The notes beneath the pieces were generated by a model. The model was not told the origin of the DNA and ran no database searches. It saw only the letters and a list, made by a program, of their open reading frames with translations. A stretch of 64,000 nucleotides of DNA from Andalucia godoyi And28 (taxonomy: Eukaryota > Protista > Jakobida), in NCBI GenBank assembly GCA_009859145.1, contig VRVR01000035.1, positions 99,978 through 163,977 on the forward strand. The letters are read 5' to 3'. The position numbers were made by a program, and so were the translations under genes. Below are positions 3,416 through 41,642 of this stretch, in pieces (position 1 is the stretch's first letter; the number at the start of each line of letters is the position of its first letter).

Positions 3416-6400
3416 TCATCGTAAACCTCCATGCTTTGCAAGGTACTTGTCGCACATTTGGACAACGGACTTTAGTCCTTTTGCATCGGATTGCTCACGA
3501 ACCATGAGAACATCTTCAATACGTCCATTCTCGATTGCCAAAAAGCACGCAGCCTTGTGTTTTTCGCAGATTAAACAGCAGAGAACCTTCCGACTGGGAT
3601 CCTTGACTTGTCCACACAGCCGCTCTGCCAGCTTATACTCCTGCAGTTCAAGCACCAAGGTATGGACGCAGGCCGTAAGCACCCCGTCCCAGTCGTCCAC
3701 GTCCACCAGACCCTTCATTTCAGTTATGAGCTCCAAAAGCTTGGCTGGCTGGTTTTGATGGATGAACGTCACGGCACACTTTCGATAAACATCTGCCGGA
3801 AGTCGCAAAGCATTCATCACCCGCACCGCCGTCCCGTACTCGCCAATCATCAGCAGCGTCTCTGCAACTCGGCACTGCTCATAAAGAGAGCCGAAGAGCG
3901 TCGTTCTAAACCCAACCATTCCGTTCTTGCGGCTCTCAACACCAGCATACGGAGAGCGCATCAAGTTTGGATCCGTCTTAAATGCAGGCAACTCTGAAAT
4001 CGTGGTGCCCGCCTCCGACATGTCGAGCAACTTCTTCAGTAACGATGTCTCCACATCACACATCAATGCATCACCGCCATATTTGCGAACCCGCGGAAGC
4101 AACTCGAGTTGTTCCAACAAGGTCTCGCACGACATGTATCCATCAAGACAACAAGACAACGCGACCTCGTTTTCACCCACGAGGGCATGGAACGAACTTG
4201 CCATCCGAAACGCACCCAGGTCTCGTAATGGCTTGGCAACCTGGTCGCGAATGCGGTTCGTAATCCCCACCTCAAACGTCTTGAATCGGTCATTCAGAAG
4301 CGCATACATTGTGGGAATCTGATTGGTCCGAAATGCACAGATCGTTAGCAAAGTCCAGTCCTCCAGGAAATCTAGCAACACATCGGCATGGCCTTGGGAT
4401 ACCAGTACCTCAACGGCAGCCACTGGAAACAGAGGACCGTTCGGAGCCTTCCGACTCTTACACGCAGTTAGCAGCTCGTCCCAGCCTTTTCCACAAAGGT
4501 CATCGGAAGTAGCCCAGATAACAGACTCCACGGCACAATCCAAGTTGTTCTTGTTGAGCAGCGGAACAGATCGATTCAGCAAATTCTTGGGCGTCGCTTC
4601 AATAGCGGCGGCCATGCTTAATCGGCTGTGTGCAGATCGAGATGCGGAGATGACAGACGCGGGGTCAATGCCAAAATACTGACACAACAACTCAGCGTAC
4701 GCAAAATGCCCACGAGAAGTCAAGTCGTCTTTCAGCAAGAGCAGTTGCTTGCTGTCGTCATTAATAATCAGTCGAATATATCGCGCCGGTAAAGACGGCT
4801 CTATCAACAGAATTTCATTGAGAACCTCAAGAACGCGCGAAGTCCTGTTCCACGGAAGAATGTGGCGTAGAGAGCCCTCCACGCGAAAGATGTCGAGAAA
4901 AAATGAAAACACCTTGCCCAGGGTGTCTGCAGGGACCGGATCTTGATAGGACTTCTCGAAGATTTCCAGGCAGACCGCCGACATCAGCTCTTGAATGAGA
5001 CTCCACGTCTGTTCCACCTTCCAGAAACACAGCACGTTAAAGGCAGTCAGATAGGCCTCCAAAGAATAGACCTTGTGCAAGCCTGTTCTTTGAATAAACG
5101 TCTTCGAAAGACTGTCTTTGTCCACAACAGCCAGCGGGAATATCTTGCGGCATAACCTGCTGAGAAGAGCCCTCGCAAACGGCATGGTCACACTCCACAT
5201 CGACTCGAAGGCGTCAACCAAAGTTGAGGAAGGGAAATGCAGCAACATTTCGCAAACCGACAATGAGATGTCGTCTGCGGATTGTATTCTTTCCAAACAC
5301 ATGTTTGCAAAGAGCAGCGCGATTCCGCACCAAGACTGACTGCAGCAAAACCGAAACGCAACAGCCAGGGAACTGGAATCTGAAGACAACTTGGCGCGCG
5401 CAGATTCATCAAACAATTCATCAAATTTGAAAATAGCATTGCGGCAAAGAGACTGCAGCCGCGAGGACATCCAAGCCGAAATGTACGTCGGAACGTCGGA
5501 CATATCCAAGAGGAATTGAATGAATGAAATGCACTCGTCGCGTGACAAGCAAACATTCAGAGGTGTATCGGCCATTTGAAACAATGAAAACAGATACTGC
5601 AAGATGACCTTGTCGTCCCGGGCAACTTCTCCTTTGTTGACAGAAGATGCTCTTGGTCGGACAAAGCGTCCATAGGGCGTGAAGGTTCGTGATGACACGG
5701 GGCCGTAGGCAAATTGAAGATCTGGAAGAAAAGTCTCGCCAGGTTTCCGAGTGACCATGCTTGCGCATATATGCAACACATCGTTATCGATTGTCGGACA
5801 TGAGTCTTTCATTTTGCGAGGAACTGCAAAGAAATACGGATCGGAAAGAATTTTGGGAGACAGGGAGCCGCCGGGTTGCAAGAATCCAGAAAATTGCAGA
5901 TCAGAGACCAGAGCTCGGAAATCGTCGTAACAGGCATCAGAAAGTTGCAGAAGCAAAACCACATCCTCGGTTCGTAGCTTGTTCAAGTGCATCATAATAT
6001 GGTTGGATCGACACTCGTGGTCATCGAGTTGCATCAGAGACCAGAACAGCTTTTGATGATCCTTCTTATCCTTTTCCTCAATGGCAAGGGTTAAAAATTT
6101 CGCAGGCAACAAGTACTCCAAATCGGATTCAATTGCTCTGGAGATAGCCACATACGGATCAACCCCGGAAGACAGCCACTGCAGGAACAATAAATTATAC
6201 ATTTCCTTTCGACGTGCATGAAGGGGGGCGGGCGTAGACGTCAAGGAAACAGCCCCGCCCATCAACTTCTGCAAGGAGATCATGTCATTCAGGAACAGTC
6301 GTATCTCTTGGATGAAGGCGTCCTGATTGCAGTGCTGTGTCAGCACTAACAGTCTCTCTGACGAAATAGAAGAAAAATCTAAAAAGGGGAACAGCGCAGC

Positions 6401-7768
6401 AATGACTGAAGAGCCCAGATTCCTAGATGCCTCCTCAACAACCTCGTAAGAACACACCAGCAGCGACTTTGCAAGCAAACTCAGGGTGAGAATCCGGAGT
6501 GATTGCAAGTCCCTTCGAATAGCATCCCAGACACTGCCACACTGCGAAATATCCGAAAGATGCGGAAGCAATGAAGCAGAAATGGAAGCTGCAAAAATCG
6601 GACCAAAATCTTGAGTAGACTGCAGACGTCCCGAAAACCGAAGCGCATCGGGCAAGATGTTTGCAGCCCAGTCCACAAAAGAAATCACGCTCTGCTCGGG
6701 AAAAAACCGAACATCTCCAACTCCGCAAATAAAACGGGACAGCTCCAGCCCGGGCGAATCATCAAGACAAATACATTGAAACTTTGCAAAATCACTACGC
6801 ATTGGTGAGAAGACGATGCTAGACAACGCGTCTGATGCCGCTGCTTGCGAATATGCCCCTTCTTCTAGATCCACGGGAGTGTGTTGGATTTCTGCTCCCA
6901 AAATTCTACCAGGGCTTCTACACAAAGAACTTCGATATCGCACTGCTAAAACGATCAACAGATACGCCGTCGATACGTCGGGTCGCAGTAGAACGGTTGG
7001 CAGATGAATTTGGCCTAGGACTTCTTCAAATAGTGGAAGCAGCCGTGCAATCGTCTTTAGAAAAGCAACGTATTCCGAAAGGAATGCACTTGTCGGATGG
7101 ACATTCAACAGAAACTGAGAAAAAAACAGCAACTCCGCGGTCATCTGGACCATATCTTTGGCATCAGGAAGGCTCGCTCGAATGCTTTGCAGGAGGGTAA
7201 TCATCACCGGCAGAAGGTCGTCTCCGATTTGAACGGTCTTGCATATGATGTACAGCTTCCGCAACAAAAGAGAGTCTCCGCTCGCCTGGATGTGCTGCAA
7301 CACCTCCTCACATGCGGAACATATGAGATCGTATCTGTAATCAAGCACCAGCTTGTCCACAAACCTCTCGGTGTTGTCCAAAAGAGACAAATTCAGCGAA
7401 TTCCTGATTTCGTACCACGACATACCCCTTTCTCTCATTTTCCAGATTTGGTTCACATTAGAAAGTGGGGAATGGCTCTGCAGCAGTTCAATGAATCGGC
7501 AATCGGATGAAAATCTCGTGAACGCATCCATCAGTTGATGATCCACAATCGAATGATCAAGAGAGTCAATGAACGCGGCATCTCGGCGAAGAAATGAAAA
7601 TACGACAGCCGCAGCTGGAAACTGCGAGGCAAAATCGTGCAGAAACTGCTTATCACGAGAGCTCAGCTCCTTTGAGCACAAGAAACTGTGAACGGAGTCC
7701 AAAAGAGTGTGGCGATTGTGCTCGAGAGATTCCAACGCGGCTTCATGAAGAGATATTCTCGGTAGCAT
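3416..7768 (-). CDS. ZFYVE26: Spastizin (ZFYVE26/SPG15)-like alpha-solenoid protein, 1450 aa
   Basis: C-terminus KVLCCLICEKHKAACFLAIE...VVQMCDKYL resembles spastizin KVRAYLICCKLRSAYLIAVK...VVQDICAQWL; the body is helical and Leu-rich. Confidence 0.7.
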   Translation of the reverse strand: MLPRISLHEAALESLEHNRHTLLDSVHSFLCSKELSSRDKQFLHDFASQFPAAAVVFSFLRRDAAFIDSLDHSIVDHQLMDAFTRFSSDCRFIELLQSHSPLSNVNQIWKMRERGMSWYEIRNSLNLSLLDNTERFVDKLVLDYRYDLICSACEEVLQHIQASGDSLLLRKLYIICKTVQIGDDLLPVMITLLQSIRASLPDAKDMVQMTAELLFFSQFLLNVHPTSAFLSEYVAFLKTIARLLPLFEEVLGQIHLPTVLLRPDVSTAYLLIVLAVRYRSSLCRSPGRILGAEIQHTPVDLEEGAYSQAAASDALSSIVFSPMRSDFAKFQCICLDDSPGLELSRFICGVGDVRFFPEQSVISFVDWAANILPDALRFSGRLQSTQDFGPIFAASISASLLPHLSDISQCGSVWDAIRRDLQSLRILTLSLLAKSLLVCSYEVVEEASRNLGSSVIAALFPFLDFSSISSERLLVLTQHCNQDAFIQEIRLFLNDMISLQKLMGGAVSLTSTPAPLHARRKEMYNLLFLQWLSSGVDPYVAISRAIESDLEYLLPAKFLTLAIEEKDKKDHQKLFWSLMQLDDHECRSNHIMMHLNKLRTEDVVLLLQLSDACYDDFRALVSDLQFSGFLQPGGSLSPKILSDPYFFAVPRKMKDSCPTIDNDVLHICASMVTRKPGETFLPDLQFAYGPVSSRTFTPYGRFVRPRASSVNKGEVARDDKVILQYLFSLFQMADTPLNVCLSRDECISFIQFLLDMSDVPTYISAWMSSRLQSLCRNAIFKFDELFDESARAKLSSDSSSLAVAFRFCCSQSWCGIALLFANMCLERIQSADDISLSVCEMLLHFPSSTLVDAFESMWSVTMPFARALLSRLCRKIFPLAVVDKDSLSKTFIQRTGLHKVYSLEAYLTAFNVLCFWKVEQTWSLIQELMSAVCLEIFEKSYQDPVPADTLGKVFSFFLDIFRVEGSLRHILPWNRTSRVLEVLNEILLIEPSLPARYIRLIINDDSKQLLLLKDDLTSRGHFAYAELLCQYFGIDPASVISASRSAHSRLSMAAAIEATPKNLLNRSVPLLNKNNLDCAVESVIWATSDDLCGKGWDELLTACKSRKAPNGPLFPVAAVEVLVSQGHADVLLDFLEDWTLLTICAFRTNQIPTMYALLNDRFKTFEVGITNRIRDQVAKPLRDLGAFRMASSFHALVGENEVALSCCLDGYMSCETLLEQLELLPRVRKYGGDALMCDVETSLLKKLLDMSEAGTTISELPAFKTDPNLMRSPYAGVESRKNGMVGFRTTLFGSLYEQCRVAETLLMIGEYGTAVRVMNALRLPADVYRKCAVTFIHQNQPAKLLELITEMKGLVDVDDWDGVLTACVHTLVLELQEYKLAERLCGQVKDPSRKVLCCLICEKHKAACFLAIENGRIEDVLMVREQSDAKGLKSVVQMCDKYLAKHGGLR

Positions 7769-15232: not shown

Positions 15233-16306
15233 TCATCGTTTACGCGAAGACCTTCGCAGATTTTGCGTCGGCTCTTGTTGTTGTTGTGTAGAAGACGAGC
15301 AGGAGGAGGAGGAGGAGGAATTCTCCATCGACGTTCCGTTGCGTTCTTCGAGACCGTTCGCAGAACTCACCGCAGTTGCCAGGAATTCAATACCCTCCGA
15401 TGGAGTATGAACTTTCTGCGCATTGTCAACTTTCGCAATGGGAGCGGCCAACAACGAGTGATACCCGGGCACTTCGTCGGCAGGACGTTGCTTCATCTCC
15501 ACGTACGCTCTGAAACCCCATTTCACCATCTCATCCTTTTCAGGGATGCGATCGATCGCAACATATCCCATTGACTGTGCCTCATCAAAGACGCTCTTAT
15601 CCTTTCCCTTGAAGTCAATTCCCAGAGTCGAAATGTGATTATGCAACATGGACAGCGGGATCTGCTTCTCTGTCGGGTTGCTTAGATCGATGATTGCAAG
15701 CGTCGTGAGCAGCATTCCGGAAAACCGAGCGTCCGACGGAGAATGGGAGTCATGTAAATTTCGCAGCGCATAGATCTTCCTCGAGGCATCTGGGACGATT
15801 TCGAATCCAAAGTGCCTGATGAGCCTGAAGTTCGCTTCCTTGAGTAACTGATTCGCGACGTTTTTTCTGCCCGAAAGATTGGAAAACGGCTTTAGGACAA
15901 GATCAACGATCATTTGCCGTTTGACCATGCTGCCATTGGACTGAGACACCAAGAACAACCGCACCAAGTGACGAACCAAAGATTCGAGCAAGTCAGACCC
16001 GATGCTCGCGTAATGCCCAGAATCTTCAGCATCGGCATTTGCGTCCTTTTCATCCGCTGCAGAACTAGCATTTTGCGACGACCCAGAAGCTGCCCGTTTG
16101 CTTTGAGTTGACCGCTGAATGTACCCTCCATCACTGTTGTCTCCACCGCCTTCGACGTCATCATCATCATCGTCGTCGTCGTCGTCGTCATCGTCATCGT
16201 CTAAGGCTCTCTTGCGGCTCACAGGCCGCTTTCGAATGTTGTCGTCGTCGCTACGGCTGCCACGGACCACTTCTCGGGAGCCTTGCTTTCTCGCTCGGTT
16301 TGACAT
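15233..16306 (-). CDS. NSMCE3: MAGE-domain protein, SMC5/6 subunit NSE3-like
   Basis: LVRHLVRLFL...VKRQMI...ANFRLIRHFGFEI...GMLLTTLAII...WGFRAYVE matches the MAGE winged-helix pattern; acidic N-terminal tail. Start taken at MSNRARK. Confidence 0.75.
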   Translation of the reverse strand: MSNRARKQGSREVVRGSRSDDDNIRKRPVSRKRALDDDDDDDDDDDDDDDVEGGGDNSDGGYIQRSTQSKRAASGSSQNASSAADEKDANADAEDSGHYASIGSDLLESLVRHLVRLFLVSQSNGSMVKRQMIVDLVLKPFSNLSGRKNVANQLLKEANFRLIRHFGFEIVPDASRKIYALRNLHDSHSPSDARFSGMLLTTLAIIDLSNPTEKQIPLSMLHNHISTLGIDFKGKDKSVFDEAQSMGYVAIDRIPEKDEMVKWGFRAYVEMKQRPADEVPGYHSLLAAPIAKVDNAQKVHTPSEGIEFLATAVSSANGLEERNGTSMENSSSSSSCSSSTQQQQEPTQNLRRSSRKR

Positions 16307-16784
16307 TCGATTCGTAATACAGCACTCTCTCGAAATATGCCAATCAATAACTTTCAAGAATGAAAGAGAAATCAAAATGAAGGAGAGAATAAGAACCAAT
16401 ATTTCTTTCAATGCTTTGTCTATTGGATTGCTGGTTTTCTGAGTTCAGAATTTGTGGAATAATAGGCAAAAATGGGGGAAAACTCCCGCCATTTGCTCAA
16501 TTGTGTCCAACTCTCGATGAGAGGAATGGCGGCATTCCCGCATTTTTATGTTGTTGTTTTGTTTTCTCTTGTCTTTTTGTTTCTTCGTTGGCTCTTGCAT
16601 TCTGTTTGCGCTTCATTAGTGATAGTCTGCATATTCTTTAGACTGCGATTGTTTCTGCCTCCGAATGTGCAAAGACATAACCAATCCACAGACAACGCAT
16701 TGTACGAAAAGCACCTGAACCCTGTCTTTGTGTGTGTTTGTGTGTCTGTGTGTGAGGGAGGGAGACAGAGAAACAGAGAAACAA

Positions 16785-21121: not shown

Positions 21122-21537
21122 ACTTGATTGTGCTTGCTCTTCTCGTCGTGATTAATTATTATTATTATTTTCTTTTTTGAATATGTACAACAATCGATCT
21201 GAATTCAGAACAAAACAAAACAAAAAAATTTAATTTAATGTAATATGATATTTATAAAAAAGAAATTGAAATTTGCTTCTCGTATTATTTTATTATTGCA
21301 GGATTCGAGATTCGACGTTCGAGAATCGTGGTGAAATGACGGGTTGCGGGTGGTTGACCAGCGCCGACCAATGTCAAACAAAAAAAAATGCCCAGTTTTT
21401 GTTTGCATCAATTGACTCTACTGCACGAAAACGAAACCCGAGTGCGTTCGTTCGTGCGTGCTTTCGGGTGTGTGAGCTTTGAGCACTGGGTCAACAACAG
21501 GAGGTCTAGGTGCTTTCTTGAGAGACTATCATTATTC

Positions 21538-21563
21538 TGTGTGTGTGTGTGTGTGTGTGTGTG
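21538..21563. repeat. (TG)n microsatellite just 5' of the PSD start codon
   Basis: Perfect TG run about 10 nt upstream of ATG 21574. Confidence 0.9.
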
Positions 21564-21573
21564 GTCGATCATC

Positions 21574-22602
21574 ATGGGGGCGCTTCGCAGGGTTTTAAAG
21601 TACACACTTGGAGCAGGTGCAGTTGCTGTTGGAGGAACAGCGGCGTTTTTGCAGTATTCGCACATGCAGATGGGCAAGCCAGGGTCGGAGTTTAAAGCAG
21701 GAGATTGGACCATTTTTGTGCCAACGCGAGGCCTTTCTCGTGCGTGGGGCACATTCACAAACACGGAGCTTCCAGAACTGATTCGTGTGCCTTTCCTAAA
21801 GACGTATGCCTGGATGTTCAACTGTAAGTTGAACGAATCCGAGCGCCCCATTGAATCGTATCCGACGCTTGCAAAATTCTTTACTCGCAACCTTGTGGAT
21901 GGGGCGCGACCGATTGATACGAAAGCTCCGTTGGTGTCGCCTGCAGACTCGAAGATAATGGCTCTCGGCCAGTGTGATACGACAGAAGAAGAGTCTAATT
22001 TGCTTGTTGAGCAAGTCAAGGGAGTTACGTACTCGGTCAAGTCTGTTCTGGCAAGGAAGACACCGGTGCCGATTTCGCCGCAGAAGCGATTGTACTATGC
22101 AGTGTTTTATCTTGCACCTGGGGACTATCACGGCTTCCATTCCCCGTCCGACGTCACATTCTCGGAGCGGATACATGTGTTTGGACAACTGTTGCCGGTG
22201 TGGACTGCGTTTGTACGCAACATTCCGGGACTGTTCGCATTGAATGAGAGAGTTGTTCTGCAAGGACGATGGGATCATGGGTATATGGGGTACATTGCTG
22301 TTGGAGCGACCAACGTTGGGTCCATTCGAATCAACTTTGATCCGGACTTGCGGACAAACGTCTTGTCACACGAGGTACAGCGCCAGATGAAGGATGTTGG
22401 GGTCAAGGGTGCAGATGAGATTGACGTCGTGGATGTGTCTTCTCTTCCAATGGTCAAGTGCAAAAAGGGAGAAAACGTCGGATTTTTTCATCTCGGGTCC
22501 ACAATCGTTCTACTGTTTGAAGCCCCGAAGGACTTCGTGTGGACTGTCAACGCTGGTGACACTGTGAAATACGGTCAAGCAATCATGGCAAAGCGAACTT
22601 GA
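21574..22602 (+). CDS. PSD1: Phosphatidylserine decarboxylase proenzyme (PSD1 type)
   Basis: SPADSK, QVKGVTYS, YLAPGDYHGFHSP, ALNERVVL, VGATNVGSI and the autocatalytic FHLGST motif. Confidence 0.95.
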   Translation: MGALRRVLKYTLGAGAVAVGGTAAFLQYSHMQMGKPGSEFKAGDWTIFVPTRGLSRAWGTFTNTELPELIRVPFLKTYAWMFNCKLNESERPIESYPTLAKFFTRNLVDGARPIDTKAPLVSPADSKIMALGQCDTTEEESNLLVEQVKGVTYSVKSVLARKTPVPISPQKRLYYAVFYLAPGDYHGFHSPSDVTFSERIHVFGQLLPVWTAFVRNIPGLFALNERVVLQGRWDHGYMGYIAVGATNVGSIRINFDPDLRTNVLSHEVQRQMKDVGVKGADEIDVVDVSSLPMVKCKKGENVGFFHLGSTIVLLFEAPKDFVWTVNAGDTVKYGQAIMAKRT

Positions 22603-22706: not shown

Positions 22707-23615
22707 TCACTTTTCTGCTTTCATCCAGCTTCTTGTTGCAATTGAAAAATCAGGGAGCACTCCCGCACTTGGTGCTGAGTAAACATGTAGCAACATGCTG
22801 AACAACAGCATATCACGATGACTTTCATGGCCGACACTCACTGTCAACAAAGCGCGAGGAACAACCTGCGACCACACAGAACCATCTGGCAGAACCGAAC
22901 AACTGCAATCTGTAACTGCAATCAGCAATCCTTGGAATTCGGGGTGGACTTCTGGAGAGAAGAAACGCCGAATTGTATCTGCCTTCATGGAAACCATGTT
23001 CGAAAAATCAATGCCAGGAGGAAGCGAGGAACAGCCATGCGTGAACACAACAACTGTCCACGGAACGCTACTGAAAGCTTGACAGATGAATCGATTGAAA
23101 AATGACAAAAACATCCGTACATCCATGAAACCAGCGCTCTGACGAAGTACGGGAGAATGGATGAAAAACACGATTTCAAATGGACACTGTGATTCGAAAG
23201 TCTCCAAGGTGGAGTCTAAAAGCTCGGCAAAATGGACGTGAATGACCGCTGTACTCAGTTCGACAACACTCAGACTGTCGTCGTGGTCATGGACAAATTG
23301 GGAACCATAAAGACCACGGACGAATGAATGCCGTCCCGAGGACTTGGCTCCAATGACCAGAACGTGAAAAATCCTCGCCTGGCGAAGCGAGACCAGATGC
23401 AACACAAGATCTGCGGCAGCATCGTACGGAAATAAACGACTCAGGACCGCACGCTCATCCTCGCAAACGTGGTTCATCACAAGCATCAAGAATAGTTCAT
23501 CTAAACAGATTGTGCAGACCGCTTTGCAAGCGAACGCAACCGACATCAGAGCCTCTTTCAGGGTGAAAAAGGAAAGAATGCGCACCACTTCTGCATATGG
23601 AAGAGACAAGATCAT
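22707..23615 (-). CDS. F-box protein fused to a degenerate Toc34/Toc159-like (AIG1-class) GTPase domain
   Basis: N-terminal LSLPYAEVVRILSFFTLKEALMSVAFACK is F-box-like; VLVIGAKSSGRHSFVRGLYG is a P-loop-like motif; VVVFTHGCSSLPPGIDF and VLPDGSVW resemble Toc34 IVALTHAQFSPPDGLPY and VLPNGIAW. Confidence 0.6.
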   Translation of the reverse strand: MILSLPYAEVVRILSFFTLKEALMSVAFACKAVCTICLDELFLMLVMNHVCEDERAVLSRLFPYDAAADLVLHLVSLRQARIFHVLVIGAKSSGRHSFVRGLYGSQFVHDHDDSLSVVELSTAVIHVHFAELLDSTLETFESQCPFEIVFFIHSPVLRQSAGFMDVRMFLSFFNRFICQAFSSVPWTVVVFTHGCSSLPPGIDFSNMVSMKADTIRRFFSPEVHPEFQGLLIAVTDCSCSVLPDGSVWSQVVPRALLTVSVGHESHRDMLLFSMLLHVYSAPSAGVLPDFSIATRSWMKAEK

Positions 23616-23849
23616 CTTACCGAATCACTGTACGAAACGAATAAGTACATTGAATAACCACTGTGTATCCTGCTAATACAATACAGAAATTGTGGACAAC
23701 AGGTGAGAGAGACCTGACACGGACACGCACACTCACTCTGTTCAATTTTGAATACAGCGTCACGTGACTTATTTCCTGTTTCAATTTGTTTACACCTATA
23801 ATACTTTCTGGAATTTCTTTCACTGATCATTGAAAGAGCTCTTCCAGTC

Positions 23850-24960
23850 AATACGGAGGGTCTTCCCGAACGAGTGCGGTTTGGGATTGGAGTTTCGTCA
23901 TTAACAACGTCATCGTCCTCCGTTCTTGAATGACGTCCGCGACAGACCTTCGCGATTCAAGCTCTGGACCAATTTCTTGGGCTCCAAGGTGCACTACCTC
24001 AGGATTGGCCCCGTTGCCTTGAACTGGTCCAGCATTGTGAACTGTTTCATCAGACTGACCAATGCGACCTTCATGATCTATCGTCAAAGAAGCATTCCGG
24101 GATACCATCACCAGGCAACAAACTGCAAAATATCCATATCAATCTGCACATCCGCAGAAGCAAGATTATGAAGATGACGGCAGTTCTCAGTCGTCAATCT
24201 AGACAGGCGATTGCTGCAGTTTGGATGCGGGCTTGTGTGAAACTGCAAGGCATCGAAGATGTAATGTCTCCATACCTTGAAACATATACCTTGAAACGAT
24301 GGACGTCTTGTCCGTTCCGGGCAAAAATCTAGAATCTCATTGACATTTTCAACAAAAGAAACGGACAATCTTCACAACCGTGACAGTTGATTACTTTTTC
24401 GAATTCTTGTTGAACTTCATGACGATCTGGCACTTTCCAAAAACGATAATGAAAATAATAGACATTCCCCAAATGTAACAGTATCTTTTGTTTTCGGTTC
24501 TCGTCACATCGAGCACCCGAACGGAACAGTCAAGGATGTCATTAAAATCATTTCAGATGGCGAATCAGGCTGGCTTCTTAACAGATTGATGCACTCATCG
24601 ATACGCTAGTCATAGTAGAATAGGACAAATCCAAAGCGCGTGGTCCAGAACACAAAGGATTCAGCACAGCCAGTGCACACCTGATAATTTCCCTAGAATT
24701 TCTATCATCTTCTTCCAAAGCCACTGGCCGCGCTTTGCTCGACATCAGTCACTTGAAACCGAAGATGCTGTAGACAATCCGCAAGGGATCCGTCCGCTTG
24801 GCAGTCATACCTAGCACAGACAACGAGAACAGCAGGCCAAGATCGGTGCTAGAAATTCGAGCGATACCGAGGTCGACTTCGTTGCGTCGAAGTTCAAAAC
24901 TACGCCAGGAGGGATTCAGAGCCTTGTCGACGCCGGTGAACACCACATCATGAAGCCAGA
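23850..24960 (-). pseudogene. Fragmented LRR-like pseudogene
   Basis: Successive minus-strand frames interrupted by stops and frameshifts give protein-like pieces: PRALDLSYSTMT, LDCSVRVLDVTRTE, RLSRLTTENCRHLHNL. Confidence 0.4.
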
Positions 24961-24997
24961 AACAGCGATCGGTGTTTGGGCGCAGGCGCGAGATTTG

Positions 24998-29709: not shown

Positions 29710-29890
29710 TTTTGGCTTTTGTGTTTGTTTGTTGTTGTTGTTGTTTTTTTTTGGGGGGGGGGGGGGTCTCAGGCTTATTCCTATTACTAGGAATTTGTCC
29801 AATTTCCAAATCTCCAAGAGCTGCATATTCTCTTCTTGCTACTCCCTTCTGTTTTGGAATCTACTTTTTTTTCCCAATCTTGTGGACGCA

Positions 29891-32800
29891 ATGGTGTTCA
29901 CTGCTTTTGAGAAGCTCCAGCTTTCAGCTTCGTTTCATGAAAAGAAGGTCTCTCATGATGTCGAGTATTTCATGTTCCACTCCTCTTTCGGAATGGTTTA
30001 CGATTCATTCCAAATATTGGCCTCCTTAGCATCGTGCTTCTTATATTGTGCGTACACTTACTATACTGAAGCTCCGAAATGGATGGCAACAACGGATTTG
30101 GCGCTGGCAACAGTATTTCTTTTCGATTTTATTCTTCAGTTGTACATGTCTCCGAACCGCCTGAAGCAGCTGCTTTCGTTCCAGACGCTCATCGACGTTG
30201 TAACTATTGTCCCAGTGTATTTGGATCTGTTCGGAATCGATGAATTTGGAAATGTCGCATTTCTTCGGGTGTTTCGCTTATTCAGAGTTTTCAGAGTTTT
30301 TAGATCTCACCGAAATGGCTCTCTGAGTTCTGAAGATTTAGGCCAAGATTCATTGCTGAAACTTGTGAGCAACCTTCTCCTTACCGTGTTTGTTTTAATT
30401 TTTGTTTCGTCCTCTATTTTTCAGCTCATCGAGGGTTCGGGAGGATATCCACTTGATTTCCATGACGCTGTGTACTTCATTGTTGTGAGCACCACGACAG
30501 TTGGATATGGCGATATTACGGTATGCGTCTGACTAGCATTTCTTTGTTTGCTTCATTTTCCATCGTTTACTTATTGATTTTCTGCAGCCAAAAACGTTTC
30601 TGGGCAAAATGTACATTGCAGCATTTTTGCTCTTCGCTATATCTCTAATTCCGTACCAAACGACGAAAATGGTCGAACTTTTGAGATTACGATCGCGATT
30701 TTCGTCCAATTTTGTATCTCCACGTGGAGCAAATTCGGTTCTTCTCATTGGGGATTTGTCAATTCCGCGCTTGAGATCAATCATATTCGAGATGTTCCAC
30801 CCTTGTCATGGAAACTCCAAGACGCACGTTGTTCTCCTCAGCCCTGGAGTTCCCGATTCAGACATGGAATTGTTTTTGAGAAACAAATTTTCTTGGGGAA
30901 GGCTATCATACGTTCAGGGCTCTGCATTGTCATCTTCCGATATTCGGAGAACAGATGTGGATCATCTTGTTGCCTGTTTGATCATTTCCGATAACACTGT
31001 TGCAAATGGTTTAGAGGAAGATCAAGAGACGGTTCTCCGATGTCTTGCAATTCGGAATGCTTGCAAAACAATTCCAATTATCGTCGAACTCGGAGATACC
31101 GATGAGAAACACCACGCCATTTCAGCAGGCGTGCATTATTTGATCGTGCGTAACGAAATGAAAGCCAACCTGCTCTCTCGTAGCATCATCGCTCCTGGTT
31201 CGTCAACGTTGATTGGCAATCTTCTTACGCGTGTTCCTCTGCTTGGGAAATCAGCATTGTCCGAAATCAAAGGAACGTGGATCGAAGAATATTACCACGG
31301 GGCGCAACATTCGATCTCGTCTTTCTCATTTCCTTCAATTTCTCGTCATTTTACGTTTCTGGATTTTTGTTTATTTGCATCTTCAAAGTACAACATCATT
31401 TGTGTGGGCTTACTACGAAGCTCAAGTCTTGACGGCGAAAGACCATCGCAGTCATTGGGGTTTTCGAATGTTGTCGAGGAGCGCCCGCATGTTGTCCTTT
31501 TTCCAAACGACAGGAATCCGCTTAGTCCCGGAGATGCGTTGTTCGCGATCACGAAAAACGATGGTGACTGCTTTTTTGTTGTTGAGGACTTGAAGCGTCA
31601 GTATCCGTATTCTTCAGGTGTGAGGGTCGGTGTTTCCAGCAATAACGACGACAAGGAATCAGGTGCAAGCAGTGTTGAATCGGATTCCAGCACTTCCACT
31701 CTCCAAACGAAGAATCCAACGTCTGTTAAGGTCGTCGAAAACACGACCGTGCATCCAACGTTACCAGATCATCTGTTCTCCGCAACTGTTGCTCACGTGA
31801 CAGCGGATCGTTTTCGACGACAGATTCACAGCAGAAATATGCATATGACAACAACCCGCAAGCATCAGGTTCGTATTTCGACTTGTTCAAATGCCATTGG
31901 CAGCCATTACTTAAAAAATGCTCTGCGCGGCAATGTTCAGGAAAGCGAAGGTGGACAACCGGCACCAGATGCAATGTATCACAAATGTTCCTCTCGAGCC
32001 ATCGAAGACTGTACAACCAACCAGATGCCACAGACAGTGAGCGGGCATATAGTAGTTTGTGGAAATATGCATGCCGTGGAACATTTTGTCGGACCCCTTC
32101 GTCGAACGGACCTCGGACCGCCTGTAGATATCGTGATTTTGACAGCCAAGCCAACGGATATCCATTGGACACGCATTGACATGTACCCAAATATCTGGAT
32201 TATAGAAGGAGAAGCGGATAACAGTGCGTCCTTGTCTCGCTGTCGCGTTGACAGCGCGTTGCACGTGGTGTACCTAGCCTCTGAACGACAGTTTTCGAAC
32301 TGCGAACCAGAATTTGTCGATTTTCAGGCAATTCTGCTCTACAATACGCTCTTCCATGAATACGGGAAAGTTCCTTGTATGTTGGAAATGGTATTCTCCG
32401 CAAACATGAGCTTTTTGCATCCGAAGCTGGACATGGACAGATTCAAGCAGCTGTCGTCAGTTCCTATGCATGCGATCTACGCCCCTCTTTTTGCATCAGG
32501 CACCGTGTTTGCCGACACATTCATCGACCAATTTGCTGCGCAATCGTATTTCAATCCCTTTGTCATTGACATCACAAATCAGTTGATCGGATCTTTGTCC
32601 GATTCACTTCATCCATCTGAACAAAAGCAACTGTTTAGAATGAAGATACCGTCAGTTGTCATTCAACGGCGGCTTCAGAAGAATGCAAGGAACGGAAGGA
32701 GCGGAAAGCCGTTAACATGGAAGTTTTGCTTCAAAACGATGGTAACGGACTTCAGCATTTTGCCAGTCGCATTGTATCGCACAACAGGGGCGTTTGAACC

Positions 32801-32903
32801 TTCTCCCCTGCCTTTTGTTTATACTTCACCTCCTCGACAGTGCATCGTCGACGAAACAGACGAGATTTTTTTTCTTGCCAATACGCCACCGACATTCAAA
32901 TGA
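29891..32903 (+). CDS. Slo/BK-family K+ channel with RCK domains; exons 29891-30520 and 30588-32903
   Basis: S4 FLRVFRLFRVFRVFR; filter TTVGYGD; the 67-nt intron GTATGC...CTGCAG gives GYGDIT|PKTFLGK in frame; RCK motifs (YVQGS, GHIVVCG, PLFASG). Confidence 0.92.
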
Positions 32904-38896: not shown

Positions 38897-39646
38897 ATGC
38901 GGTCGTTTCTGTTGCATTCCTGCCGTGGCTACTCATTAAGGATCGTATTTGACGCTTCCAAATTTGCGGCTCAGTGTTCGGAAGGATGCGAAGCCTTTAT
39001 TGAGGCGCGGTGGCAGGAAAAGTTAAAGTCGAATCCTCGAATCTTCAACGGATCAAAGTTCAGGTTACACATGTTTCACATTGACGATGATGAGCGTGTC
39101 TGCACTCTGTTCCTCGGACTTTCCGACTACCGTTCATATCTCGGGACGAATGCTGCGGCGACAGTCGGATTTCCCTACGACGACCGCCACTTGTCCAATA
39201 TTTTGGGAGTGGAATGCATTGTCCGGACGTCGGATGACAGGCTAGTTGTTCTGAAAAGATCCTCTGAAGTTGCTGATTATCCAGGGGCATGCGTATTCCC
39301 TGGAGGCCACCCCGAACCATCCCGCGTGGCAAGCCACCTGAATGCAGAGTCGATTGCTGCCGAGATCCGAAGTGCAGCACTGCAGGAATTGCTGGAGGAA
39401 ACGGGAATTCCGCCGTCTTCCATTTCCGAGTATCAGCTGTGTGTGGTGCAACTGGATTCTCTGCGCATGAACAAGCCTGACATTGTCTTTTTCGGTCGGA
39501 CGTCACTGTCCAGCGAAGAGGTTCTCGAAGTGTACTCTACCGCTAAGGACGGGTTCGAGTCCACTTCCATTTTGTTCTTATCTAACGAGGACGTGGCCTC
39601 TGAAAAGTTTGTTCCTTCCCAGTTTCTTTCCGTCATTCCTCCTTGA
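38897..39646 (+). CDS. NUDT22: Nudix hydrolase, NUDT22-like
   Basis: IFNGSKFRL, LGLSDYRSYLGTN, LGVECIVRTSD, VFPGGHPEP, ELLEETGI. Confidence 0.8.
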   Translation: MRSFLLHSCRGYSLRIVFDASKFAAQCSEGCEAFIEARWQEKLKSNPRIFNGSKFRLHMFHIDDDERVCTLFLGLSDYRSYLGTNAAATVGFPYDDRHLSNILGVECIVRTSDDRLVVLKRSSEVADYPGACVFPGGHPEPSRVASHLNAESIAAEIRSAALQELLEETGIPPSSISEYQLCVVQLDSLRMNKPDIVFFGRTSLSSEEVLEVYSTAKDGFESTSILFLSNEDVASEKFVPSQFLSVIPP

Positions 39647-39680
39647 ATCCTCATTTGCCTCACCAGCATCCGCCTTTTTC

Positions 39681-41642
39681 ATGTCTGTTGAAATTAGACC
39701 CGGAGTCTTTCGAAGCGCACTCCATGATGTTGCATCATCATCTTCTGACGCACTTGGGGTGAGCACCATTTTTGATGCTGTGCATCGATCTTTTTCTGCT
39801 TTTCCTTCACGGTGTATGTTTGAGTATGAGAAAGGCCGACATGTAGATGGGCAGGATGTGGACAGTGGAGAGAAAAACGAGATTGCTCATCAATCATTCT
39901 CGGATGTTGAGCGTCGTGTCAGGGATATTGGATCAGGGTTGTTGCATGCAAAGGTACTCAGTAAGGGCGACTATGTCGGAATTATTTCTCGCACAATGTG
40001 CGAATGGCAGCTTGCAGCGTTTGCATCTGATTATTGTGGCGGGGTCCTTGTTCCCATGTACGACTCTTCTGCTGCTGACAAGATTCAATACATCCTTGAC
40101 AAGGTGCCCTTCTCCCTTTTGTTTTCGTCTGTTTCTAATTTGAAAAATCTCGCCGAAGCTCTCCAGGCCTCAGAGGCATCTCGTCAGAATTTGCGTTGTG
40201 TTGTGGTTCTTGAGGAACTGTATCACAACTTTCCCGAGTCGATGCGATCTCTGTTCCGTTCGTTCGACATCAAGCTGTTTTCTTTATCGGAGGTTGAACG
40301 GCTGGGCAGGGAAACCGGTGTCTTGGAAGCTACACCATTGGGCCCCACGGATGTGTGCACGATGATCCAGACTTCTGGCACGACAAAGAATCCTCGGTTG
40401 GTGCCCTTCACAGGACCGGGCATGCTGTCGGCAGTGAGTGGTGCGCTGCTGGCTCTCCAAGATAGCGGCTTTGTCTTCCAAGAGGATGATTCTTACTTGG
40501 CCTATCTTCCGCTGGCACACGTGTTTGAAAGAGCGGTTGAACTTGCTGCTGTATTGTCGGGAATTCGTGTGTCGTATTTTTCAGGAGACGTGAAGGACTT
40601 TGCAAGGAACGTTGCGCAATTTAAGCCGTCGTTGTTGTGTGGCGTCCCTCGTATATGGAATCGAGTCTACGAGCAGATCATGCGCGAAGCATCTTCCAAT
40701 CCTTTCCAGAAGTTCATCTTCGCTCAGATGTGTTCCCTGAATCGGCTTGCAAGGCGAACCAAATTGGACGCCATCTTTCCCAGTCGCTTGTTGTTTGGGA
40801 AAGCCCGCCGAGTATTTGGTGGACGCCTGAGACTCCTTATGTCTTCGTCGGCTTTGTTGAGACCGGAAGTGGCTTCCGTGTTGTCGATTGTGCTCGCTCC
40901 TCTGGTGCAAATTTACGGTTCTACTGAAACCGGAGGCGCCGGTTTGATTACGAGCGTGAAACGCAATCTCCACGATGCTTCTTCTTTGGGATTTCCGCTT
41001 CCTGGGTGCGAAGTATGTTTGCAGTCTGTACCGGATTTAGGGTACAGTGTCAGTTCCAATCCTCCGTCAGGAGAGCTTCTTGTTAGAGGCCCGTCGGTGA
41101 GCAAGGGCTATTTCCAAGATCCGAAATCGACTGCAGAAGACTTCCTTCCAGACGGCTGGTTTAGGACAGGTGACATCTTTCATAAGAACCGAGATGGGAG
41201 CTTCAGCATAATTGACCGACGCAAGAACTTTGTGAAGACTTCGCACGGAGAATTTGTTGCTCTTGAGCATGTTGAAAGTGTTCTTGTGAAATCGGACCTG
41301 GTCGAGAACATTTGGGTGCACGTAGACTCATCCCAACCATTTTCGGTTGCCATTGTGCTAGCGGATGAATCTCGACTGCAGAAGGCGGTCTCCAGTTCTG
41401 GCAGCTTGAGTGACAAATCGTCTTCAGAGGACGTTGCAGCCGATACGGTTCTAAAAGATATCGAGAGAGTCGGACGAGAACACGGTCTTCGCGGTTTTGA
41501 AATTCCAAAGAAAGTCTACGTTGAGACGAAGGTGAAGTGGTCTTCCGAAAACGATTTCTTGACGCCAACCATGAAGAAGAAGCGCACCAAGTTTCGAGAT
41601 GCGTATGGTTCCACCATTCGTGAAATGTATTCGGAGGCATAA
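39681..41642 (+). CDS. Long-chain acyl-CoA synthetase (ACSL/LACS)
   Basis: TSGTTKNP, YLAYLPLAHVFER, GVPRIW, YGSTET, GELLVRGP, DGWFRTGDI, IIDRRKN. Confidence 0.92.
   Translation: MSVEIRPGVFRSALHDVASSSSDALGVSTIFDAVHRSFSAFPSRCMFEYEKGRHVDGQDVDSGEKNEIAHQSFSDVERRVRDIGSGLLHAKVLSKGDYVGIISRTMCEWQLAAFASDYCGGVLVPMYDSSAADKIQYILDKVPFSLLFSSVSNLKNLAEALQASEASRQNLRCVVVLEELYHNFPESMRSLFRSFDIKLFSLSEVERLGRETGVLEATPLGPTDVCTMIQTSGTTKNPRLVPFTGPGMLSAVSGALLALQDSGFVFQEDDSYLAYLPLAHVFERAVELAAVLSGIRVSYFSGDVKDFARNVAQFKPSLLCGVPRIWNRVYEQIMREASSNPFQKFIFAQMCSLNRLARRTKLDAIFPSRLLFGKARRVFGGRLRLLMSSSALLRPEVASVLSIVLAPLVQIYGSTETGGAGLITSVKRNLHDASSLGFPLPGCEVCLQSVPDLGYSVSSNPPSGELLVRGPSVSKGYFQDPKSTAEDFLPDGWFRTGDIFHKNRDGSFSIIDRRKNFVKTSHGEFVALEHVESVLVKSDLVENIWVHVDSSQPFSVAIVLADESRLQKAVSSSGSLSDKSSSEDVAADTVLKDIERVGREHGLRGFEIPKKVYVETKVKWSSENDFLTPTMKKKRTKFRDAYGSTIREMYSEA

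Follow-up and report, generated by a model that had tools for sequence, protein, structure and literature searches.

Can a receptor domain of the chloroplast import machinery occur, without its catalytic motifs and joined to an F-box, in a eukaryote that has no plastid? This question is raised by an open reading frame (ORF) at positions 22707-23615 on the reverse strand of a 64,000-nucleotide stretch of DNA (the window), which is part of contig VRVR01000035.1 in assembly GCA_009859145.1, the draft nuclear genome of the jakobid Andalucia godoyi. A first-pass annotation of the window had read this ORF as an F-box fused to a Toc34/Toc159-like pseudo-GTPase and had considered a TOC-like domain worth attention if the host lacks a plastid. 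The host does fit that description, because A. godoyi is a heterotrophic, free-living aerobe; its genome is compact (~20 Mb) with few introns (PMC7050145). The TOC receptor GTPases have been described only from Archaeplastida and are regarded as an invention of that group, host-derived and related to AIG1 and septin GTPases, although their origin is still debated (PMC12845241; bioRxiv 10.64898/2026.03.28.715002). Profile comparisons suggest that residues 61-259 of the predicted protein are probably homologous to a TOC34-type G domain and that the N-terminus carries a probable but divergent F-box. A tentative reading of the whole protein is a soluble substrate receptor of an SCF (Skp1-Cullin-F-box) ubiquitin ligase.

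The comparison with TOC proteins relies on a profile (A2) built from the A. godoyi protein and its single relative, P0003, a 134-amino-acid (aa) protein encoded on a 1320-bp JGI metagenome contig (L001). P0003 shows 29% identity to residues 146-280 of the target (pairwise E 4e-12; library-wide E 1.2e-4). When this profile was searched against 177,635 distinct PDB sequences, Arabidopsis Toc33 took ranks 1-3 (3BB3, 2J3E and 3BB4; E 0.14-0.29) and Chlamydomonas Toc34 (7VCF chain G) took rank 6, and no GIMAP, septin, Ras or Era protein appeared at E<=10. The match to Toc33 consists of two colinear segments, residues 62-109 lying on Toc33 14-63 and residues 176-263 on 141-244. For profile-profile alignment by hhalign, in which all E-values are pairwise, real Toc33 and Toc34 G-domain sequences were taken from PDB, and a TOC profile (A3) was made from 38 aligned Toc33/34 sequences out of 120 collected. 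The two profiles aligned at 78% (score 43.6, E 1.8e-5) over 193 columns, with residues 61-259 on TOC 22-249. The value was 85% (score 45.8, 188 columns) against five TOC sequences and 86% (score 46.5, 192 columns) when Toc90/120 were added to the 38 sequences. Single sequences gave 63% (atToc33; score 37.5, 167 columns) and 55% (psToc34; score 36.0, 167 columns). The whole TOC34-like pseudo-GTPase domain, residues 61-259, corresponds to 22839-23435 on the reverse strand, as do all features of the protein given below, and is delimited by hhalign alignments of 78-86% with E 5e-6 to 2e-5 over 188-193 columns.

None of the null comparisons approached these values. Two hundred column shuffles of the two-sequence profile reached at most 2.3% and a score of 23.0 against the TOC profile, and the reversed profile reached 0.5% (score 18.1). 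The 42 other ORFs of the window gave at most 1.0% and 21.2 against the two-sequence profile. Five human GIMAP G domains aligned to the target profile at 1.1% (score 19.4, 11 columns), whereas GIMAP aligned to TOC itself at 97.9%; identity as a GIMAP/AIG1 protein was rejected on this result. In the converse direction, the target scored highest (29.7) when the TOC profile was compared with the 43 window ORFs that have 150 aa or more, the runner-up scoring 20.4. P0003 alone aligns to the same TOC region as the target, and a hidden Markov model (HMM) of the TOC alignment ranked the target and P0003 first and second among 81 sequences.

The order of elements along the domain is that of a TOC34 G domain. 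A helix before the G domain (residues 61-79, LFPYDAAADLVLHLVSLRQ; 23379-23435) aligns to the TOC34 N-terminal helix QFPxATQxKLLELLGKLKQ by hhalign and HMMER, FP...LRQ in the target being paired with FP...LKQ. It is followed by a strand, a Gly-rich loop and a helix, which form a degenerate P-loop (residues 83-104, FHVLVIGAKSSGRHSFVRGLYG; 23304-23369) colinear to ILVMGKGGVGKSSTVNSIIG, with FHVLVIG-AKSSGRHS-FVRGLYG paired with LTILVMG-KGGVGKSS-TVNSIIG. Neither the helix alone nor this half of the domain alone is significant. A hydrophobic strand and loop (residues 146-159, FEIVFFIHSPVLRQ; 23139-23180) aligns to the IDVLLYVDRLD box of TOC (FEIVFFI with IDVLLYV), where P0003 keeps MDLVFYVQDPLVRQ, and a Trp-ending helix is present in both target and TOC. 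The strand with TH...PPG (residues 188-204, VVVFTHGCSSLPPGIDF; 23004-23054) occupies the position of the TOC G4 region LVVLTHAQxSPPDGLxY, so that VVVFTH...PPG..F is paired with LVVLTH...PPDG..Y; P0003 keeps VVVWTHGNSPTAPGITF here. Finally, VLPDGSVW (residues 241-248; 22872-22895) aligns to TOC ILPNGxAWIPNL, its counterpart being ILPNGxAW, and P0003 keeps the complementary FLANRSAWRPQL. The TOC motif LPNGxxWIPxL is split between the two relatives, L-P-x-G-x-x-W being found in A. godoyi and W-x-P-x-L in P0003. The alignment is structurally sensible, and the deletions relative to TOC are located in loops.

Two motifs, TH-x4-PPDG-x2-Y and LPNGxxWIPxL, mark the TOC34 type. They are represented by THGCSSLPPGIDF and VLPDGSVW in the target and by THGNSPTAPGITF and FLANRSAWRPQL in P0003, and the residues T, H, one P, G, F/Y, L, P, G and W fall on columns that are invariant in TOC, with the spacing off by one residue. 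The sequence strings on which the first-pass annotation had based its reading are all present in the ORF: LVLHLVSLRQ-ARI-FHVLVIGAKSSGRHSFVRGLYG at residues 70-104, the TH...PPG string at residues 188-204 and VLPDGSVW at residues 241-248. The Toc34 string set beside them is indeed the pea Toc34 sequence (PDB 1H65). The annotation had given the TOC hallmarks as THxxxxPPxG and VLPxGxxW; the latter is found as VLPDGSVW, but the spacing in the query is TH-x5-PPG, and hhalign, which aligns this stretch without gaps, brings just one Pro and the Gly of the query onto TOC PPDG.

If the alignment is right, the nucleotide-binding motifs of this domain have been lost. G1 (Walker A), GKGGVGKS in TOC, reads GAKSSGRH in the target (G89-AKSS-G94-R95-H96), with Arg95 in place of the Lys and His96 in place of the Ser/Thr. 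G3, DTPG in TOC, lies opposite a gap (TOC IIDTPGL). G4 is THAQ in TOC and THGC in the target, NKxD being absent, and G5, ENS in TOC, falls within a deletion. A pattern scan of the 302-aa protein found no DxxG, no [NT]KxD and no GxxxxGK[ST]. DTPG is absolutely conserved in AIG1 domains (PMC12845241). The hydropathy profile shows Kyte-Doolittle windows >1.6 only at residues 35-42 and no C-terminal hydrophobic segment, and a transmembrane anchor or signal-anchor was rejected on this basis. The Walker A Lys-to-Arg replacement, the missing G3 motif and the missing C-terminal anchor had all been noticed from the sequence, and the scans bear them out, adding the replaced Ser/Thr. With the Walker A Lys and Ser, DxxG, the G5 ENS and the membrane anchor gone, the domain cannot, on this alignment, function as a GTPase or as a TOC-type membrane receptor. 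Judged by these features it does not belong to the TOC GTPases and at most derives from their fold in degenerate form. Where Toc33/34 has its arginine finger (YRVD), the target has M164-D165 and P0003 has F-R-E, so the conservation of the finger is ambiguous. The C-terminal tail (residues 260-302; 22710-22838) has a weaker coding signal and no transmembrane anchor, and its part beyond ~residue 283 is absent from P0003.

The N-terminal segment has a different affinity. An F-box-like motif is recognized at residues 2-42 (LSLPYAEVVRILSFFTLKEALMSVAFACKAV...; 23490-23612) by sub-threshold Pfam matches and by hhalign. When the N-terminal 45-65 residues alone were searched against Pfam, only two families matched, F-box-like PF12937 (E 0.0026-0.0086) and F-box PF00646 (E 0.019-0.034), and both models align from model position 1 to target residues 2 to ~42. 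Six shuffles of the N-terminal residues gave zero Pfam matches at E<=10. A separate F-box profile was made from eight F-box segments (Skp2, beta-TrCP, Fbw7, Cdc4, TIR1, cyclin F, Fbxo2 and Fbxl3); in validation it retrieved 45 PDB chains at E<=0.001, all of them F-box proteins with the intended ones on top. The N-terminus aligned to this profile by hhalign at 54-62% (score 22.9-24.4, pairwise E ~1e-4) over residues 1-31, while 150 shuffles scored at most 16.4 (7.7%) and the N-termini of the 42 other window ORFs at most 14.5. In the consensus LPxE(I/L)xxxI(L/F)...L......V(C/S)KxW, the target has L5-P6, E9, I13-L14, L19/L23 and C30-K31. The F-box-like N-terminus proposed in the first-pass annotation is thus moderately supported, by the two F-box models as sole Pfam matches and by hhalign scores above the nulls, but it lies below the gathering cut-offs and is not called on the whole protein. 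These results make a divergent F-box probable, albeit below curated thresholds.

The ORF is real and coding. It comprises 302 complete codons and a stop, an in-frame stop lies three codons 5' of M1, and the product is a predicted soluble A. godoyi protein whose exact 302-aa sequence is held in EukProt. The codon-usage log-likelihood per codon in the target frame is -4.03 and falls among the values of 15 neighbouring genes (-3.89 to -4.05); the five other frames give -4.26 to -4.37. In a sliding codon score, the coding signal begins at the ATG and is weaker across the final ~45 codons, with none in the 1.38 kb upstream; a longer gene through upstream exons was ruled out, since 23616-24997 is without coding signal. 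An RNA gene near the target was also ruled out, as the Rfam and tRNA scans were empty. The NCBI gene calls of the contig omit the target gene. Because several other neighbours likewise are found only in EukProt, this absence is uninformative, and the NCBI record appears to annotate mainly curated mitochondrial proteins.

Relatives of the protein are few. A word-indexed search of 5.8 billion proteins returned the target itself only, and the same type of search with the two-sequence profile returned only the target and P0003. An exhaustive phmmer search of 1.84 billion cluster representatives added P0003 and one further entry, P0002, a 4103-aa repetitive bacterial surface protein in which 24 stretches were matched and which was dismissed as a repeat artefact. 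The P0002 match covers residues 17-71 of the target (window 23403-23567), and its E of 1.4e-27 is the sum of 24 weak repeat matches; this case cautions that, with highly repetitive proteins, a sum of scores can seem significant. By phmmer against PDB, the whole protein found nothing, and PDB searches with the N-terminus alone and P0003 alone yielded nothing relevant. A DNA-pattern scan of metagenome contigs revealed no further relatives, a metagenome scan with the TOC profile yielded three plant-like or alga-like loci only, which were useless for widening the profile, and no paralogue of the target is present within the window. Every downstream inference is therefore limited by a family of two known members. 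On L001, the gene downstream of P0003 (783-1319, forward strand; JGI sample 3300042934) encodes an NAD-dependent epimerase/dehydratase (PF01370).

Several observations weigh against the TOC34-like and F-box assignments, and they are shared out among four other explanations. The protein could be a lineage-restricted alpha/beta protein unrelated to TOC, its motifs resembling TOC by chance or by convergence of nucleotide-binding-like folds and its N-terminus being an F-box or not; we consider this unlikely but by no means negligible. Pfam gave zero matches at E<=10 with the whole protein and with residues 66-302, including AIG1 PF04548, which is carried by all 120 listed Toc33/34 proteins. HMMER support for TOC is at noise level (PDB E 0.14; TOC HMM 5.6 bits), and the hhalign signal is mostly C-terminal, the part from the TH strand onward giving 76% alone and the helix and P-loop half 0.6%. 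The G domain of Chlamydomonas Toc90/120 alone is at the hhalign background (0.7%), which led to rejection of a Toc159-type identity; a genuine member of the AIG1 clan would not be expected to score at background with Toc90/120 and GIMAPs. Because Toc90/120 are at background, the similarity is specific to the Toc33/34 type and does not extend to the whole superfamily. Identity to the TOC consensus is 20% at TOC-invariant columns and 16% elsewhere, an effect too weak to be used as evidence. Moreover, it was precisely for its likeness to TOC that the first-pass annotation had singled out the locus. AlphaFold2 was run twice, once with the single sequence (pLDDT 38.5) and once with the domain and P0003 (pLDDT 42.4), and neither model has usable confidence. 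The Foldseek comparison envisaged in the first-pass annotation came to nothing, since the matches of both models had TM values <0.23 and were discarded as meaningless. The list of the second model consisted mainly of RecA/KaiC-type P-loop proteins, and the Rad51 of the window, aligned by hhalign as a control, was at background (0.2%, score 15.8). In the better-scoring part of that model (residues 147-234), the order strand-helix-strand-helix-strand equals strand 4, helix 3, strand 5, helix 4 and strand 6 of the TOC alignment, a weak agreement that serves as a consistency check only. Set against an unrelated fold are the colinear alignment over ~190 columns with all nulls at or below 3%, the unbiased PDB search that puts Toc33 on top, and the two relatives, 29% identical, each of which can be aligned to one and the same TOC region and which keep complementary motif halves. 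A degenerate Rossmann-type dinucleotide-binding domain of the lactate/malate dehydrogenase kind, with VLVIGAKSSG as a decayed GxGxxG and VVVFTHG...PGI.F..M as the VVVTSGAPRKPGMSREDL loop of malate dehydrogenase, appears very improbable. It is suggested by a profile (A6) of the region common to both sequences, the C-terminal half, which ranked five malate dehydrogenases first in PDB (E 0.56, 55 residues; VVVFTHGCSSLPPGIDFSNM against VIVVTSGAPRKPGMSREDL) and found no TOC protein at E<=10. By hhalign, however, malate dehydrogenase reached 3% (score 23.8, 43 columns), and a single Toc33 on an equal footing reached 63-74%. The match to Chloroflexus malate dehydrogenase (PDB 1GUY/1UXH) is local, 43-55 residues around the loop, and the spacing and other elements do not fit: the distance from the Gly-rich loop to the TH strand is ~100 residues in the query, ~68 in malate dehydrogenase and ~115 in TOC. 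Pfam Ldh is unmatched. The malate dehydrogenase rival is weak, yet it shows how thin the HMMER signal is.

The domain could instead be a true degenerate TOC34-like/paraseptin G domain whose N-terminus is a mere helical extension, in which case we would be dealing with a soluble pseudo-GTPase that acts as scaffold or regulator and is unconnected with ubiquitination. This appears rather unlikely. The F-box matches amount to 16.3-17.9 bits for PF12937 and 14.5-15.3 bits for PF00646, below the gathering cut-offs of 24.3 and 20.5, the conserved F-box Trp is replaced by V33, and the hhalign alignment covers ~30 residues. Moreover, the fusion has been seen once only: the reading frame of P0003 runs past the 5' end of its contig, so that its N-terminus is missing and a second species does not confirm the arrangement. 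A mere extension would have to account for two F-box models as the sole Pfam matches, aligned from model position 1 at the very N-terminus, for the clearly lower scores of shuffles and of 42 natural N-termini, and for LP, E, I/L and CK at consensus positions. Lastly, the absence from the NCBI gene calls, the lost catalytic motifs and the weaker coding signal of the last ~45 codons would suit a non-functional ORF, either spurious or the decaying remnant of a gene such as an algal Toc34 acquired by transfer. Such an origin is scarcely credible for a frame that is intact over 302 codons, has frame-specific codon usage equal to that of neighbouring genes, several of which are also missing from the NCBI calls, and has an open-frame relative whose 29% identity implies long-term constraint.

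Among known systems, Toc33/Toc34 come first. The element order of the target is colinear with that of Toc33/Toc34 (Arabidopsis Toc33, PDB 3BB3/2J3E; pea Toc34, 1H65/3BB1) through LPxGxxW at an identity of ~20-23%. The target differs in that it adds an F-box-like N-terminus, has no anchor and occurs in a host without a plastid, where a role beside Toc75 in a plastid outer envelope does not apply; it is ~17 residues shorter from the P-loop to the hydrophobic strand, and a 9-residue loop before LPxG is deleted. The Toc159 family (Chlamydomonas Toc90/Toc120, PDB 7VCF chain F) shares its superfamily with Toc34 and has W-K-Q-Q-L where P0003 has W-R-P-Q-L, but the target is without the acidic and membrane domains of that family. 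With AIG1/GIMAP/IAN proteins (human GIMAP1, 2, 4, 5 and 7), whose G domain has a conserved box between G3 and G4, the target shares only the short hydrophobic strand with T-H/R (VVVFTH against ILFT[RH]K). F-box proteins of the FBXO class, whose substrate-binding domain is neither WD40 nor LRR, have an N-terminal stretch of ~40 residues with LPxE..IL...L......CK and a distinct C-terminal domain, as in the target, although the target scores below Pfam gathering and its conserved Trp is replaced. Pseudo-GTPases are G-domain folds without nucleotide binding, such as CENP-M and the pG domains of p190RhoGAP. Like these in general, the target would carry degenerate G1-G5 motifs on a G-domain-like scaffold with presumed protein-protein contacts, and its scaffold would be of the TOC34 type. 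No paper combining 'F-box' and 'pseudoGTPase' was found in the library searched, and of the five papers retrieved on F-box proteins and AIG1/GTPase-domain SCF substrate receptors none, judged by title, evidently deals with such a fusion; the first-pass annotation likewise knew of no described example.

We therefore return to the soluble SCF substrate receptor with an N-terminal F-box and a dead TOC34-like domain, which is possible and is our working explanation. The divergent F-box at residues 2-42 would dock onto Skp1 in the SCF ligase. Residues 61-259 would be a heavily decayed version of the G domain of TOC34, a paraseptin/AIG1-related GTPase that in plants is a chloroplast import receptor. 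The dead G domain would most likely act as a nucleotide-independent protein-binding module that selects the substrate of the ligase. TOC G domains form dimers across the nucleotide pocket and also bind transit peptides. By analogy, candidate partners would be a further G-domain protein, with which the dead domain could pseudo-dimerise, or an N-terminal targeting peptide. We infer the fold, Skp1 binding, the loss of nucleotide binding and the role as substrate receptor alike from sequence comparison. A bolder extension, quite unlikely in our judgement, is that a TOC34-type domain with the hallmarks TH...PPxG and LPxGxxWxPxL in a plastid-free discobid reflects an import-receptor module drawn from a cytosolic family that is older than, or independent of, the primary plastid and that jakobids retained, nucleotide-dead, as the recognition part of an F-box protein. 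Under that extension, the protein might bind organellar precursors that have failed to be imported, through their N-terminal targeting peptides, or else a partner G protein, and mark what it binds for ubiquitination.

The surroundings of the gene are those of ordinary eukaryotic housekeeping genes. They include Rad51, DNA polymerase subunit B, Snf7/ESCRT-III, phosphatidylserine decarboxylase, a mitochondrial carrier, Vta1, topoisomerase II and TFIIH p62. Gene order around the ORF gives no functional clue, and no Skp1 gene lies within the window. On one side, a gap of 1.38 kb (23616-24997) extends from the mitochondrial carrier gene to the start of the target and is unusually long for this compact genome; it has no convincing coding signal, Rfam family or tRNA, and its two longest small ORFs have no Pfam match. 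On the other side, the mechanical ORF of the phosphatidylserine decarboxylase gene (21388-22602, forward strand) has 404 aa and reads a perfect (TG)13 microsatellite at 21538-21563 as CVCVCVCV. Because the annotated product has 342 aa, the true start must be further downstream, which leaves the repeat in the 5' leader.

Other parts of the window also deserve mention. Two adjoining ORFs at 29729-32903 (forward strand) resemble a single Slowpoke/BK-type potassium channel gene, the ORF at 29729-30532 carrying Ion_trans and Ion_trans_2 and that at 30609-32903 a Slo-like RCK, BK_channel_a and Slowpoke_C; the ~75 bp between them is probably a short intron or a frame change. A NUDIX-domain ORF (38897-39646, forward strand) overlaps, in another frame, the start of an AMP-binding ORF of the acyl/aryl-CoA ligase type (39483-41642, forward strand), and the overlap could mean that both belong to a single gene interrupted by an intron or frameshift, or that a TTG start has been placed too far upstream. 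Two conserved eukaryotic factors are encoded on the reverse strand, a 1450-aa protein with a ZFYVE26/spastizin-like TPR C-terminus (3416-7768) and a 392-aa protein with a MAGE homology domain, Nse3-like (15233-16411).

The consequences depend on the TOC resemblance. If it is spurious, what remains is an F-box-like orphan gene confined to one lineage and of limited general interest. If it is confirmed, the protein would be of the FBXO type with a new recognition domain and would contain the first TOC34-like domain outside plastid-bearing lineages. Quite apart from the origin of TOC, the combination of an F-box with a dead G domain would constitute a new type of substrate-recognition module for SCF ligases and one more case of an enzyme recycled as a binding domain. 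A TOC34-like domain in a deep-branching, plastid-free heterotroph would bear directly on the debate over the origin of TOC, since the module would either predate plastids or have moved between lineages, and the origin of the chloroplast import receptors would become testable with a concrete protein.

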